Positions 51,287 to 56,261 of a stretch of 64,000 nt of DNA are shown piece by piece. The DNA comes from Entomortierella parvispora E1425 (lineage: Eukaryota; Fungi; Mortierellomycota): NCBI GenBank assembly GCA_020891255.1, contig BQFW01000008.1, forward strand, positions 1,240,001-1,304,000, written 5' to 3'. The position numbers and the translations under genes are program-made. The first letter of the stretch is position 1; each line of letters opens with the position of its first letter. Under the pieces are notes generated by a model. It was not told where the DNA came from, ran no database searches, and saw only the letters and a list, made by a program, of their open reading frames with translations.

Positions 51287-54200
51287 TCACAGAATTGCTG
51301 GCTGAACGCGAACACGCTTGGGCGAAATCATCACCACCATATCATCCTCATTCTCCTCCTCGTATTCATCGTCGTCCTCAGGATGCTCATACCGCCGGAA
51401 TGCAGGGGAGGACGAGCCCAAACGGTGCTTAAGGGATTGGCGCCGCTTGGAGGGTGTGCCTACGCCCGAGGAACGTCGGCTGGAGGGGGTCGAGGCCAAA
51501 TCCAGCTTTGCCTCATCCACAAACACTGCGTCATCGGCTCCACCATAGATAGCTCGATCGCCAGACTCGTCCTCATTGGCGTCTTCTTGATCAAGCATCT
51601 CCATCTGCTCAAAGGACTGCTCGTTTTCCATAGAATCCTCTGATCCGCCCTCACCCAAAAGTCGCAGCAGCTCTGCTTGCTCAGCATCCTCTTTCGACAC
51701 AGAGGGCAGTTGACCAGCGCTGGCATTGGACAGCGGTTCATTCTCCTTGTCCGATGAATCAGAGGCCGCTATCATCTCGGACGGTTGTCTTCCGCCAAAT
51801 CCTAATACCTTGGATGCCACTTGCTTGAATTCGGTCAAGGAAATGGTTCTCCGCCGGTTCGTACCACCCGAGACCTTCTCCATGTCGCTGCCGATCTGTC
51901 GATTTTCGTCACTGTGGCTCTGACTGCGAACGACCATAGTTCTCCTTTGCGGAAATATGTCCGAGCGTCTACCTCTAGCCCTGATCTGTTCCAGAGTGCG
52001 TGTCGACTGAAACATGGATTCTTGGGACCTTACGAAAGCAAAGTCCTTGGACTTGGGCGAGGGCTCTCGTCCACCGACAAGAATCTCAAGAGCATCTTGG
52101 TGCGTTGTCTGCCTTCTTGGAGTAGTTACAGAATCATCAGTCTTCTCTGCTACTTGAAGTTCGGATTCAATCTCTGCTTCCTCTACTTGCATGACCAAAG
52201 TATCTTGTTGCGGGTCGGATGGCTTCTCCAGGGTTTGAACTTCCAGGTTCACAACCAGATCTTCCCTCTTCTCCTCCAGCGGGGCAGACTCCATCAGCCC
52301 TGAGTTGGTAATATCCTTTGTGGGCGTGCGTACATAGTTTCTAAAGCCTGCAAAGCTCGCAAAGCCAAACTCCACAACTTTCTGCGGTGTCCTAAAGACA
52401 CTGCGAAGGCCAGTAAAGATGGGACTTTGGCTGCGATCCATAGGGGCGCTCGCGGGAGCACTGAGACGCCTATTTGGCATACTGGTGGATGAGAAAATCG
52501 AAAGATGACGTGTGTTTGGTGGGGATGGTGTTCGCATTAATTGGTCTCTGGAATCTTCAGCCTCTCTTGTATCCATAGCAGCATCGTTCGTCGTCGCTTC
52601 ATCGTTGGTGCCATCTACGCCTTCATCTTGGGCCATAAACTCTTCCTCACGGTCTGCGCTAGTCAGCTGCCCTGATTCTGTATTCCATTCATCCCGGTCT
52701 GCTAGTCCAGACGCTGAAAGGTTGGCAGGCGCACTAGGAGCAACGTCTGAAGACACTTGGAGCAAATCTGGTAGTCCCTGGAGTTTTTGGGCAGAAAGTT
52801 GGAGAAGCGCGAGCCTTGAAGCAGAGCCAGGCGTTCTGATAGTTTCCTGATGATTGATATCTCCCTCAGAACGTCGGATAGGAGTATGTACATGACGTTC
52901 TGTGCTCATAGCTGATGGAGAGGGTGATGAGGGTGGTGATGCTGAAGAGCTGCTGAGAGGAGACAGCATTTCAGGATCTTGCAGAAGGTCCTCCTCCTCC
53001 TCCATAAAGGGGTTGTTGTCGTCAAAGGGTGTGGACGTGGACTGGATGTTGAGCACACTTTCGTCATTGGTGTCCTGATATGAAGGTCCGCGTGCTTGTC
53101 CGATCGGCGTAAATCTGAGGTGGTCTGATAATTCCTCCCGAGGTGGGCGCGTAGGAGTGACTGGAGGACTTTCATCTGTATCGTCGGGGCCCAGATCTGA
53201 TGAAAGAATTGCCGTCAGGCTATCCAAAGCTCTAGAGTCCGCATCATCCCCAAATGACTCCTGCATGGCCACGAGCTTTTTCCATCTTCCATCATCAGGA
53301 CTCGAACTGCCAGCCTCCTGGTTATCACTTTTCACATCGTTGCAATCAGAGAAGGGATCTTCCATTTCCTCCCTGGGACTTGCAGCTTCGTTGTCGTAAA
53401 GTGCCTGTGGAGGCTCGACAGGTTGGAGTACTTCCGGTGCCTTTTCAGTTTGCGGGGGATCGTAATCATCATCCATATTCGCCAGAGCACGAAGACTGAG
53501 AGGCTTGGGTTTGGTGATGTTGTGCGTCAATCCTGTTCGCAGCCTTGACGGCGTCAGGATGGGTTTGGAAACAGACCCCACTGATTGTAGCCTTGAAAGG
53601 AGTGTAGGAGTCGATACCCCATTACGTCTTGGAGTATCGGGATCTTGCTGTTGTCCACGCTTTACTGGGGTACTGGGTGGATTCGACTTGTCAAAGACCT
53701 CTGGACTAAGTGCTGGTCCGAAAGAGACTTTTTTTGGAGTTCTGCCTGCGCATGGTGACATGTCCTCTGTTGCCTTTCTTTTGTCTCTTGTTGGGGTTGT
53801 CATACCCCTTTCCGAAAGTCTGTCCAGTGGCTGCTCCGATTCTGGACTTGGGTTCAGGATGGAGGGTTCATCCACCATGACATAGGTCTTTCTTGGCGTA
53901 GTCGACTTTTGTGGCGTAGTTGATTTCAATGGCTGTGTCAGGAATGCTGGAAGGGGCACTGGCTTTGGCGAAACAAGCAGGCTGGAGAGTTTGGCGGCGC
54001 GATTTGGGGTAAAGAGTCCCAAAGACGATTCGAGTTCTGCTGCTGAACGAGCCGTGTTTCTCCTTGGAGTGGTCAGTATCCGCGATTCGGGCTTTGGTGA
54101 AGATGTCCTGGCAAGACTGAAGAGTTCTTTGTCGACACTGGCTTGAATAGCCCGGATATCTTTTCCTGGTGTGTTGGGGACAGTCGTCGAGCTTGGCTAT

Positions 54201-55152
54201 TGTTTCAATCAAGTTGTGGATGTCGCAGTCAGCATAAAACAACACCCCAAAAAAGCCTCTATGGGGCAGGCTGCATGTCATCCCAAGTGCAAAATCTCGA
54301 ATAACGTACTGCAACCACTTCGAATCTAAACTTGCGTCCAGCAATCGTCAAGACATCGTAATGAAAAATAATCCGCGCCGTGTTGTGAAGGAGTACATCG
54401 TTCAGCAGCGTTCCGTCGCTTGACGTGTCTTTGAGCCAAACCTAGTCCACAATGAGATGAGAAGTATTTCGCAAGGTTAGTCCAACCATTCCTCTGTTAT
54501 GCTCTTAACGATGTTCCTTCTCACGATGCTACGACATAATCCAGAGACTAACCTCGCCATCGTCCCGTCTAATAAGTTTGCAGTGCAAGTCCGAGACCGC
54601 GTCGATTTGGACACGAATGTCATTCGTATCGTTCCGTCCAAAGGAACAATACGACTTGTCGATGGGGTACCGATAGTATTCGCTCTCGTCCTGTTTCTTC
54701 AGACCCACGATGTGACCCCAGACCCCCGTCTTGATTTTCGTCTTTTTAGGGGTGTTGGGAGGCATAAGTCGAGTCCTTGTTGGGGTTCGCTGCGTGGGGC
54801 TATTTCCGCTGCCGGGAGTTCCATTCTGTCGGTAGAGGCTGCTGAGTCGAGCTGATTTCCTCGAGGACGGACTGTGGTCCAGGGGAGAGTCTGGCTGCAC
54901 TGGCGTCGACTGCAACCCCGCGGAGGAAGGCGAATCATTAAAAGGGTTGGGCAGACCATGTTCTTGTGCCTGCGGTTGTGATTGTGGTTCTGATTGAGTC
55001 TGAGATCGAGGCGGTGAAGTTGAGGACGAGGACGCGCCTTTGCTGGTAGTTGCGGAGGTATGGAACGACTTTATGGTTGCGCCAAAAGGAGAGGCTTGCA
55101 GTGCGCTTTTGCGCAAGAGTCGCCGCCCTGGACTCTTTGGGGTGTCTGCCAT
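51287..55152 (-). CDS. Ki-67-like protein: FHA domain, PP1-docking motif, FxTP repeats, large disordered region (3 exons, 1,213-aa model)
   Basis: Exons 55152-54553, 54441-54310 and 54196-51287 join in frame. FHA: CSFGRNDTNDIRVQIDAVSDLHC...LKDTSSDGTLLND. PP1 motif: KKVSFGPALSPEVFDKSNPPSTPVKRG. Repeats: FTGLRSVFRTP and FAGFRNYVRTP. Confidence 0.75.
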
Positions 55153-56261
55153 TGAGAGAAGAGAAGATATTCCTGCTCAGATGATTTGATTGATGAATGG
55201 AAGCAAGGGCTGAGGGGAAACAGGCAGGGAGAGGGAGAGAAGGAGGGGGAGAGAACGGAGGACGGTGATGAATGAGAAGACAGAGGAAAGAATGAATCAG
55301 AGAAGGGGGAAGGGGAATGAAGAGAGAGAGAAAAGAAAAGCAAAGAGGAAGATGACGCGCTCTTTGTTTGTGTGTTTGTGTGTGTTTGGATGTGGATGCT
55401 TCCAAGTGACCTGGGAGAATGCAAAAAGGACTGTGTTCTGTGCCTGTGTTCTGCGGTGTGTCTCTGACGCGTGCTTTTTTTTTTTTTGCTTTCCCGTCTT
55501 TCCTTCTCTCACGCTGACTCCCAGCCTGCCTTTGTTGTTGCTGTTGTTGTTGTTGCTGTTGTTGTTTTGCTGCGGGAATTGCTTGGGTCCATGCATTATT
55601 GTCCCGCATCCATAATCGCAATCACTCGAAATAAAACAAATGGATTCTCATTCGCGTTCGGATCTCTGGGGCTCTCTGCGGTCTTTTATCGTTTCTTTGG
55701 GGTTTAGGTTAAGGTCCCTGGCGAGAAGGGTCTGACACGGTCCATGCCAAACTCGGTTGTCTGAAGTACCTTCGGACAGATGTCAAGGCCATCCATCCTG
55801 CTCCAAGAACAGGTCGATTTACACTCCTTCGCAGGCAGCATCGAACCACAATATTACTGTTTGTTCTTAGTTTCCGACACGGGCAACCCAATTGCTTTGT
55901 TATTTGTATTCGCATACATTTTGGGTTGCGCTCCAATATTGAGGAACAAGGAGCCCACTTAGCGAATTGAATGAAATAAACCAAGCAGGGTGGCCTCCTC
56001 AGCCTGTCAACTTCAAATGACTGGTAGCTGTCCCGTGAAGATCGTCGAAACTCTGGACCCTTCTCATCTCGGGCCACCAAACGCGCTCCCGGACACCTTT
56101 TATCTGTCTGGCTCTTAATGTTTGCAATATCGATACAAGTTCCTCTCCCAACACATGCCATGAAGATGACCCCATGCCACCAAACTTGTTCTATGCATTT
56201 TGTTTTCCGCTGCCTTATTTAATAATTATTTGCGAAAATTGTGATTACTGTACAAAATGTT

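Follow-up and report, generated by a model that had tools for sequence, protein, structure and literature searches.

An Entomortierella parvispora protein of the Ki-67/bridgin family with a putative two-copy Ki-67 repeat core

EMPS_06072 is very probably the single Ki-67/bridgin-family protein of the soil fungus Entomortierella parvispora, a largely disordered scaffold rich in CDK sites that would read phospho-threonine through its FHA domain and dock the catalytic subunit of PP1. Downstream of the PP1 dock, we read residues 818-872 as an array of two Ki-67 repeat-core units with a 21-aa period, and by sequence comparison this core appears to be common to vertebrates, a tapeworm, and, among fungi, the two lineages Mortierellaceae and Kickxellales. 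That fungi possess a Ki-67-like protein, and that the family is of pre-animal origin, is already known from published work; the shared repeat core is what our analysis contributes, and it alone appears to be new.

The gene lies in a window of 64,000 nucleotides, the whole stretch of DNA analyzed here, and had been placed at positions 51287 to 55152 by a first-pass annotation made from the sequence. The translation of each of its three exons is an exact, contiguous piece of the database protein P0001 (1213 aa), which is 100% identical to the NCBI entry [quoted passage not shown]. Because the exon translations match P0001 exactly, these limits are the exact limits of the coding sequence. The gene is built as follows:

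51287..55152, minus strand: whole coding gene, three exons, 1213 aa, stop codon at 51289-51287, exon translations within P0001
54553..55152, minus strand: exon 1, residues 1-200 (200 aa), with the donor GTTAGT starting at 54552
54442..54552, minus strand: intron 1, 111 nt, GT..AG, interrupting the FHA domain
54310..54441, minus strand: exon 2, residues 201-244 (44 aa), the second half of the FHA domain, matching FHA profile positions 33-66
54197..54309, minus strand: intron 2, 113 nt, GTACGT..AG
51287..54196, minus strand: exon 3, residues 245-1213 (969 aa), and the stop codon

Whole-protein analyses were run on P0001 and the exons were searched separately; splicing and expression of the gene are predicted from annotation and conservation. 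A search for MCB-like promoter elements upstream of the gene gave nothing notable. EMPS_06072 has 39 orthologues in Mortierellaceae, the majority of which carry the automatic database name "antigen identified by monoclonal antibody Ki-67", as the first-pass annotation had guessed of automated pipelines. Outside Mortierellaceae, a word-based homologue search returned one chytrid only and was replaced by an exhaustive profile search.

The protein opens with two features:

54703..55152, minus strand: N-terminal extension, residues 1-150, basic (pI 11.5), S/T/P-rich, and disordered as judged by composition
54310..54690, minus strand, with intron 1 inside: Ki-67-type FHA domain, residues ~155-244, defined by Pfam, PDB comparison, AF2 fold, and tree

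The FHA domain (Pfam: residues 170-233, E 2.3e-9) is of the Ki-67 type, distinct from the Rad53, CHFR, and kinesin types. It had been described as N-terminal; it is indeed present, but it begins at about residue 155, behind a disordered extension of 150 aa that sets EMPS_06072 apart from vertebrate Ki-67 (MKI67) and from bridgin and whose first ~30 residues are conserved across Mortierellaceae. Among PDB sequences searched with phmmer, the best match is the human Ki-67 FHA (1r21/2aff, E 1.2e-9), with Rad53 at 8e-4. The human domain, 34-36% identical, is also the nearest solved fold: an AF2 model of the EMPS_06072 FHA (pLDDT 88.7) returned the Ki-67 structures 2aff and 1r21 as the top two Foldseek matches (E 2e-8, rmsd 1.4-1.5 Å, 34% identity), and the matches that follow are at ~20% identity. 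In a tree of 74 FHA domains (106 columns), all 48 from PP1_bind-bearing proteins, EMPS_06072 included, share one side of a branch, a clade of moderate support (SH-aLRT 83). PDB E-values, Foldseek, and the tree thus agree in grouping the domain with Ki-67 FHAs and not with those of Rad53 type.

As in Ki-67, a PP1 dock composed of RVxF, PhiPhi, and KiR-SLiM-like elements lies downstream of the FHA domain:

53654..53743, minus strand: PP1 docking segment, residues 396-425, defined by Pfam PP1_bind, PDB peptides, and a predicted complex

Within it, KKVSFGPALSPEVFDKSNPPSTPVKRG corresponds to residues 399-425 (window positions 53654-53734, 1 nt away from the earlier placement) and contains the RVxF-type motif KVSF, a PhiPhi element, and the KiR-SLiM-like FDKSNPPSTPVKRG, together with candidate phosphosites for Aurora (S402) and CDK (S408-P and T420-P). 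Pfam PP1_bind matches significantly, at 36.9 bits where the cut-off is 27, and the segment is the sole PF15276 locus in the 38.9-Mb E. parvispora genome. A PDB sequence search with it returned only the PP1-bound peptides of Repo-Man (5inb/5ioh) and Ki-67 (5j28). Of the 13 specified positions that precede the final x(T/S)P in the published KiR-SLiM consensus, nine are kept (PMC5005033). Arg 20 of PP1 gives Ki-67 and Repo-Man their selectivity (PMC5005033), and this residue is also found in P0203, the PP1 of a congener.

A segment of the Ki-67/Repo-Man type predicts PP1 binding, and complex modeling points the same way. The modeled PP1-segment complex has an ipSAE of 0.87 against 0.00 for the best control, a score that the model may owe to having memorized 5J28/5INB. 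Of 78 solved complexes, 51 reach the 0.87 mark, as do 2 of 108 mismatched pairs. Three runs share at least 90% of contacts, with a partner pLDDT of 60-63. Predicted contacts involve residues 399-407 and 409-419 of EMPS_06072 and residues 19-24, 70-78, 242-243, 261, and 288-299 of PP1, the RVxF pocket included. By homology, EMPS_06072 would dock PP1 on the extended Ki-67/Repo-Man surface through all three elements. In early mitosis binding would be off, with an Aurora-type kinase phosphorylating the Ser inside KVSF and CDK phosphorylating the two conserved S/T-P sites. Binding would then resume in anaphase, when PP1 might be taken to a mitotic chromosome-associated structure, be it the chromosome surface, nucleolar chromatin, or the kinetochore.

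The resemblance to Repo-Man (CDCA2) raises the question of whether EMPS_06072 could be its functional equivalent, a chromatin PP1-targeting protein for anaphase histone dephosphorylation rather than an organizer of the chromosome periphery. The two PP1-binding segments are near-identical (KVSFGPALSPEVFDKSNPPSTPVKRG versus RVTFGEDLSPEVFDESLPANTPLRKG), EMPS_06072 retains the positions at which Aurora B and CDK1 phosphorylate Repo-Man, and the PDB E-value is slightly better for Repo-Man (1.4e-5) than for Ki-67 (2.8e-5), with LSPEVFD identical. The genome, moreover, holds one PP1_bind gene, which would need to serve both roles, and Ki-67 is reported to be ancestral to Repo-Man (PMC4032110). However, the E-values hardly differ, one role does not preclude the other, and Repo-Man has neither an FHA domain nor Ki-67 motif repeats, both of which EMPS_06072 carries. 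We consider a Repo-Man equivalent quite improbable and favor a Ki-67/bridgin-family scaffold, which the repeat region further characterizes:

52313..52477, minus strand: conserved block RRxSAP...SPIFxGLRxVFRTPQKVVE..FAGFRNxVxTP, residues 818-872, in 24 of 24 aligned orthologues, whose profile finds Ki-67 arrays
52385..52417, minus strand: Ki-67-motif-like unit 1, FTGLRSVFRTP, residues 838-848, followed by QK, giving a TPxK CDK consensus
52322..52354, minus strand: Ki-67-motif-like unit 2, FAGFRNYVRTP, residues 859-869, in register with consecutive repeats elsewhere

The core of the human Ki-67 repeat is LAGFKELFQTP (PMC8354752), and in both proteins the pattern Φ-x-G-Φ-[KR]-x-Φ-Φ-x-T-P occurs on the C-terminal side of the PP1 dock. 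Both FxGΦRxxΦRTP motifs had been singled out in the first-pass annotation and are kept in all 24 aligned Mortierellaceae orthologues, with R842, V844, F845, T847, P848, and Q849 invariant in unit 1 and G861 and R863 invariant in unit 2. An HMM of residues 818-872 built from Mortierellaceae only, and searched on 142 hits from unrelated lineages, reaches up to 43.5 bits and scores above 7 bits in at least 20 proteins, against a maximum of 5.4 bits for reversed and locally shuffled controls. The matches are named Ki-67 repeat arrays of Antechinus, pig, birds, reptiles, and alligator, as well as the repeat arrays of a Hymenolepis (tapeworm) FHA protein and of the Mycoemilia scoparia "Ki-67". In the converse direction, an HMM made from animal Ki-67 repeat cores only ranks residues 838-849 first within EMPS_06072.

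The Mycoemilia protein (P0087), also named "antigen identified by monoclonal antibody Ki-67" and among the fungal Ki-67 homologues of a 2026 preprint (bioRxiv 10.64898/2026.06.18.733134), provides a close fungal comparison. It likewise combines an FHA domain with PP1_bind and shares the repeat core, for example as FSGIKQLLKTP and FAGMRDLLKTPQK; residues 835-872 of EMPS_06072 can be aligned in register with two successive units of it. It differs in its size (2601 aa), in its eleven tandem units, which repeat every 18 aa, and in its basic charge (pI 9.0), the C terminus being basic too (pI 10.3).

Shared ancestry of the FHA domain and PP1 dock does not by itself make the motifs homologous to Ki-67 repeats, and they could instead have arisen by convergence. 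The motif is short (11 residues) and present in just two copies, and a hydrophobic patch followed by a TP site can arise repeatedly in disordered CDK substrates. The 112-position Pfam KI67R model (PF08065) gave no match at E<=10 when run against full-length EMPS_06072, five of its orthologues, or the motif block cut out by itself; it overlaps the bird and pig arrays found by our profile and does not match those of Mycoemilia or Hymenolepis. In the homologues from chytrids (Chytriomyces, Cladochytrium, Siphonaria, and Dinochytrium) and Jimgerdemannia, no repeat motif rises above shuffled controls, which makes the fungal distribution of the motif patchy. Several observations nonetheless argue for inheritance. 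The motif belongs to the same protein family and has the same position there, past the PP1 dock, and the similarity reaches past the core, with SP before it and TPQK after it. The two copies are in register with two consecutive 18-20-aa repeats of Mycoemilia, tapeworm, and birds, unit 2 aligning with the second of the two in each case. A motif regex gave 288 matches in 82 PP1_bind proteins, none in 60 FHA proteins without PP1_bind, and none in reversed sequences; composition-preserving shuffles of EMPS_06072 contained at least one match in 0.95% of cases and a pair within 30 aa in 0 of 20,000. Ten other conserved islands of EMPS_06072, searched as HMMs against the 142 family and FHA hits, gave no animal signal, and only one of them, the island that follows the PP1 dock, found anything in Mycoemilia (a weak match of 10.3 bits). 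We therefore regard convergence as rather doubtful and retain the reading of the block as a repeat-core array.

By homology, the FxGΦRxxΦRTP(Q/T)K units would represent the Ki-67 repeat core in a minimal form of two copies. Each consists of a short hydrophobic patch and then a CDK site, and would most likely form a CDK-gated contact with a partner.

FHA domain, PP1 dock, and repeat motifs are thus each detected above chance by a test of their own. The first-pass annotation had taken the conjunction of these elements to indicate true homology with Ki-67 and a pre-animal origin, and their separate matches to Ki-67 support both proposals. Its premise that Ki-67 is generally discussed as an animal protein no longer holds, as fungal relatives are published: the 2026 preprint describes fungal Ki-67 homologues and calls homology in non-vertebrate proteins unidentifiable except in the FHA domain (10.64898/2026.06.18.733134). 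Our literature search found no report of a Ki-67 motif core detectable in fungi.

The remainder of EMPS_06072 is a disordered body punctuated by conserved islands:

53933..54082, minus strand: linker island, residues 283-332, ...LGLFTPNRAAKLSSLLVSPKPVPLPAFL, nearly invariant in Mortierellaceae
52484..53488, minus strand: acidic disordered region, residues 481-815, pI 4.05, net charge -46, defined by composition
51290..51487, minus strand: C-terminal conserved islands, residues 1148-1213, ...TPSKRRxS..SSPAFRRYE..acidic run..MISPKRVRV, an end that is not basic

An S/T-P-rich disordered body had been noted, and 51 S/T-P sites are present, 21 of them full [ST]Px[KR] sites; S, T, and P make up 30-42% of the flanking regions, a composition from which we infer disorder. 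A long disordered body with many CDK sites is a further likeness to Ki-67. For the linker island, the HMM found nothing among the 142 hits beyond Mortierellaceae-like ones.

In size and charge, EMPS_06072 and Ki-67 diverge. The fungal protein has 1213 aa against ~3256 aa and two repeat units 21 aa apart against sixteen of 122 aa in human Ki-67 and many of 20 aa in birds and reptiles. It is acidic as a whole (pI 5.14, against ~9.5-10), and increasingly so toward its end (pI 4.74 over the last 300 aa and 4.29 over the last 150 aa). In most animal members of the family, the C terminus has a pI of 9-11. EMPS_06072 hence lacks a basic chromatin-binding C terminus and has no counterpart of the LR-type C-terminal domain of Ki-67. 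The "Ki-67 architecture" attributed to this gene therefore holds for the FHA domain, the PP1 dock, and the motif core, but not for a Pfam KI67R match, an overall basic charge, or a basic C terminus. The basic parts of the protein are residues 1-150 and 245-480, and these segments flanking the FHA domain would be the likeliest site of chromatin contact, if any. The domain hNIFK_binding (PF12196), carried by NIFK, the FHA partner of animal-type Ki-67, was not detected in a six-frame search of the E. parvispora genome, where the only candidate (15 bits, E 0.75) lies antisense to a V-ATPase proteolipid gene and was rejected as spurious; the partner might be diverged.

The acidic end also bears on how EMPS_06072 relates to bridgin (Bgi1) of Cryptococcus neoformans, the only functionally studied fungal family member (Sridhar et al. 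2021, PMC7794384), whose study answers the statement in the first-pass annotation that no functional work was known. The bridgin authors call Ki67 the metazoan homologue and list homologues in early-diverging fungi, including Jimgerdemannia of the Mucoromycota (PMC7794384); in basidiomycetes, retention of bridgin tracks loss of CCAN linkers. By its published description, bridgin has the same order of parts as EMPS_06072, with an FHA domain first, then a PP1 docking site, then a long unstructured stretch that is acidic (pI 4.65, against 4.05 for residues 481-815), and EMPS_06072 could accordingly be imagined as a kinetochore linker of the bridgin type. However, bridgin function requires a basic C-terminal domain of ~300 aa (pI 11.2), a feature its authors demand when calling homologues (PMC7794384), and the last 300 aa of EMPS_06072 are acidic. 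The repeats differ as well, being acidic EEDEVQ units in bridgin and Ki-67 motifs here, and the bridgin PP1 site is described as unconventional, whereas EMPS_06072 has the full Ki-67/Repo-Man-type segment. A role as a bridgin-type linker is thus unlikely, and a family scaffold with Ki-67-like elements remains our preferred reading.

Since 1993, to our knowledge, no function has been assigned to the Ki-67 motif. We lean, with some reserve, toward viewing it not as a vertebrate repeat but as an ancient short linear motif, gated by CDK and already present before fungi and animals diverged. Mortierellaceae would retain it as a minimal array of two copies, in a protein that is acidic and without a basic C-terminal domain. 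If so, what the motif does could be separated from repeat number, from charge blockiness, and from the coating of chromatin, and a search for its conserved partner could use a small fungal protein that has only two sites to mutate. Inheritance rather than convergence would argue for a specific conserved interaction over generic phase-separation chemistry, for which EMPS_06072 would offer a two-site minimal test system, and would mean that the Ki-67/bridgin family can do without a basic chromatin-binding tail.

The span 51287-55152 corresponds exactly to one minus-strand coding gene of three exons, as the first-pass annotation had delimited it, and matches the CDS of P0001, the database protein 'hypothetical protein EMPS_06072 [Entomortierella parvispora]' (1213 aa), whose residue numbering is used here. 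The exons were searched separately: exon 3 retrieved P0001 in a word-based search of proteins, all three exon translations are exact contiguous substrings of it, and it stood in for the spliced product in whole-protein analyses. Both introns are GT..AG (111 and 113 nt), and the predicted splicing rests on annotation and conservation. Approximately 380 bp 5' of the start codon, in what is presumably promoter or 5' UTR, lies a (TTG/CTG)11 microsatellite (55532-55564), which gives poly-Gln in a non-coding minus-strand frame.

Exons, domain, and motifs of the gene
55152-54553, minus strand: exon 1, 200 codons
54441-54310, minus strand: exon 2, 44 codons
54196-51287, minus strand: exon 3, 969 codons plus stop
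Residues 170-233: FHA domain, Pfam E 2.3e-9, interrupted by intron 1
53654-53734, minus strand: PP1 segment KKVSFGPALSPEVFDKSNPPSTPVKRG, residues 399-425
52385-52417, minus strand: FTGLRSVFRTP, residues 838-848
52322-52354, minus strand: FAGFRNYVRTP, residues 859-869

The PP1 segment and the two FxGΦRxxΦRTP motifs are present where they had been noticed from the sequence alone. The FHA domain, described there as N-terminal, does fall within the N-terminal part of the protein, but a basic, S/T/P-rich extension of 150 aa precedes it. By sequence, the closest solved structures are the human Ki-67 FHA entries 1r21 and 2aff (E 1.2e-9), followed by Rad53 FHA1 (8e-4). A Foldseek search of the PDB with an AlphaFold2 model of the domain (mean pLDDT 88.7, 36-sequence alignment) again returned Ki-67 FHA entries as its top two matches (E 1.9e-8, TM 0.78/0.86, rmsd 1.4 A, 34% identity), with the remaining FHA structures at ~20% identity each. 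In a maximum-likelihood phylogeny of 74 FHA domains, a single branch separates all 48 that occur with PP1_bind (7 Mortierellaceae, 8 other fungi, and 33 mostly animal) from all 26 that do not, with moderate support (SH-aLRT 83) from an alignment of just 106 columns. A grouping with Rad53/Tos4-type FHA domains, which would speak against homology with Ki-67, appears in none of these three comparisons.

The PP1 dock gives a significant Pfam PP1_bind match (36.9 bits; cut-off 27), and in the PDB this segment matches only peptides of Repo-Man and Ki-67 from their crystal structures with PP1 (5inb, 5ioh, 5j28; E 1.4e-5 to 2.8e-5). Its LSPEVFD is the same as in Repo-Man, and the stretch corresponding to the KiR-SLiM consensus FDxxLP(P/A)N(T/S)PL(R/K)(R/K)Gx(T/S)P (PMC5005033) reads FDKSNPPSTPVKRG. 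The Ser of KVSF, S408-P, and T420-P, invariant in 24 of 24 aligned orthologues, are counterparts of the switch sites for Aurora B and CDK1 that PMC5005033 describes in the PP1-binding segment. PF15276 has exactly one locus in the 38.9-Mb genome, namely this gene.

The PP1 gene of E. parvispora was also found. Two STPPase_N matches, representing a PP1-type phosphatase N-terminus, lie 1.9 kb apart on the same contig, ~490 kb past the window's end: the first (L004, G000:C8:1789921-1790043) is clearly a Glc7/PP1 gene of at least two exons, and the second (L005, G000:C8:1791806-1791928) may be a tandem PPP-family paralogue. A congener's PP1 (P0203, 331 aa) is 97% identical over the exon and carries Arg at position 20, the PP1 selectivity residue of PMC5005033. 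The predicted complex of P0203 with residues 385-440 reached an ipSAE of 0.87 against 0.00 for the best control. Of 78 solved complexes, 51 attain this value, as do 2 of 108 mismatched pairs; because similar complexes have already been solved, this score expresses likeness and is not proof of binding. At least 90% of contacts agree between runs (partner pLDDT 60-63), involving residues 399-407 and 409-419 of the E. parvispora protein and PP1 residues 19-24, 70-78, 242-243, 261, and 288-299.

As to the Ki-67-like repeats, the motif core is conserved and a profile of it finds Ki-67 arrays, but Pfam KI67R matches neither the protein, nor five orthologues, nor the excised block (residues 818-872), even at E<=10. 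The block, RRxSAP...SPIFxGLRGVFRTPQKVVExCFAGFxGFRNFVMTP, is kept in 24 of 24 aligned Mortierellaceae orthologues, so that the FxTP motifs are indeed conserved in related fungi. Since word-based searching reached a single chytrid outside Mortierellaceae, we used the region from FHA to PP1 dock as a profile in an exhaustive search, which gave 8392 matches at E<=1e-3, the best 150 of which were kept. Against the 142 non-Mortierellaceae proteins among these best 150 of 8392, an HMM of the Mortierellaceae block scored up to 43.5 bits, with at least 20 proteins above 7 bits, compared with maxima of 3.8 bits for reversed sequences and 5.4 bits for five locally shuffled sets. The proteins matched carry tandem repeat arrays.

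Repeat arrays in proteins matched by the Mortierellaceae block
Antechinus Ki-67: LSGIRELMATP, 20 times
Pig FHA-domain protein (UniRef, without name; Pfam KI67R 1524 bits): LAGLRELFQTP/LAGFQELFQTP
Birds: LSGIKQLMKTP, 20-aa period; similar arrays in lizards and alligator
Hymenolepis diminuta FHA protein (P0160): 13 units, 18-aa period
Mycoemilia scoparia, Kickxellales fungus (P0087): 11 units, 18-aa period; FSGIKQLLKTP, FAGMRDLLKTPQK, and others

Pfam KI67R matches the arrays of birds and pig and misses those of Mycoemilia and Hymenolepis at E<=1; its reach is therefore essentially vertebrate, and it seems to detect too few of the Ki-67 repeats outside vertebrates. When aligned, the two Mortierellaceae units keep the register of two successive array units, including the SP ahead of the core and the TPQK behind it. 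Conversely, an HMM built from animal repeat cores alone ranked residues 838-849 first in the protein, over all reversed and shuffled controls, with the low absolute scores of a very short model. A core regex finds 288 matches in 82 proteins with PP1_bind and none in 60 FHA proteins without PP1_bind (reversed sequences 0, shuffles 0-3); of shuffles of the protein itself, 0.95% gave a single match and 0 of 20,000 gave two matches within 30 aa. Ten other conserved islands of the protein had no match in animals. The core common to the fungal block and the published human motif, TPKEKAQALEDLAGFKELFQTP (PMC8354752), is Φ-x-G-Φ-[KR]-x-Φ-Φ-x-T-P, and on these sequence comparisons we read the block as a putative minimal two-unit Ki-67 repeat array. 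One caveat to this reading is that the motif is patchily distributed: chytrid and Jimgerdemannia homologues show nothing above shuffles. The two-copy pattern recurs in P0135, an intronless, SRA-derived, acidic FHA and PP1_bind protein of 1755 aa (Logan SRR29749770 contig, L008:3001-8268), with the motif-like units SFTGVKLMFQTPK and NLSALREGLRTPS.

The protein departs from Ki-67 and bridgin in its charge. Mycoemilia and most animal members are basic proteins whose C-termini have a pI of 9-11, whereas the E. parvispora protein is acidic (pI 5.14), as are its residues 481-815 (pI 4.05); its basic parts are residues 1-150 (pI 11.5) and 245-480 (pI 10.7). Chytrid members are acidic overall yet mostly keep a basic tail, unlike the last 300 residues here (pI 4.74). 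Bridgin function needs its basic C-terminal domain, and a basic tail was its authors' criterion for homologues (PMC7794384), a screen that the E. parvispora protein would fail. Cladochytrium replicatum has two FHA and PP1_bind paralogues (P0056, P0066) with nearly identical FHA domains and C-termini that are basic in one (pI 9.2) and acidic in the other (pI 5.4); the family's functions may be naturally divided between them. The E. parvispora genome yielded no hNIFK_binding domain; the sole PF12196 match (L007:1501-1566, G000:C5:1405754-1405819) scores 15 bits, lies on the strand opposite a V-ATPase proteolipid subunit gene, and is spurious.

Most Mortierellaceae orthologues carry the automatic name 'antigen identified by monoclonal antibody Ki-67'. 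Ki-67 has been described as ancestral to Repo-Man (Booth et al. 2014, PMC4032110). Sridhar et al. (bioRxiv 2019; Nat Commun 2021, PMC7794384) described Cryptococcus bridgin, a kinetochore-chromatin linker with FHA, PP1 dock, repeats, and basic tail, named Ki67 as its metazoan homologue, and reported homologues in Smittium, Batrachochytrium, Jimgerdemannia, Rozella, Paramicrosporidium, and Dictyostelium. Haider et al. (bioRxiv 2026, 10.64898/2026.06.18.733134) reported Ki-67-like proteins in fungi, Mycoemilia among them, found homology beyond the FHA unidentifiable, and described no shared repeat core. The novelty suggested by the first-pass annotation is hence unsupported: proteins of this kind are known, and one from a fungus, bridgin, has already been studied (PMC7794384). 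In the literature consulted, we found no earlier report of a motif core conserved across kingdoms, nor of the minimal form with two copies seen here.

All three elements, the FHA domain, the PP1 dock, and the repeat core, support the proposed homology with Ki-67. By homology, the protein, which contains 51 S/T-P sites (21 of them full CDK-consensus), would be an FHA-anchored disordered scaffold for cell-cycle-switched PP1 targeting that carries two CDK-gated Ki-67 motifs.
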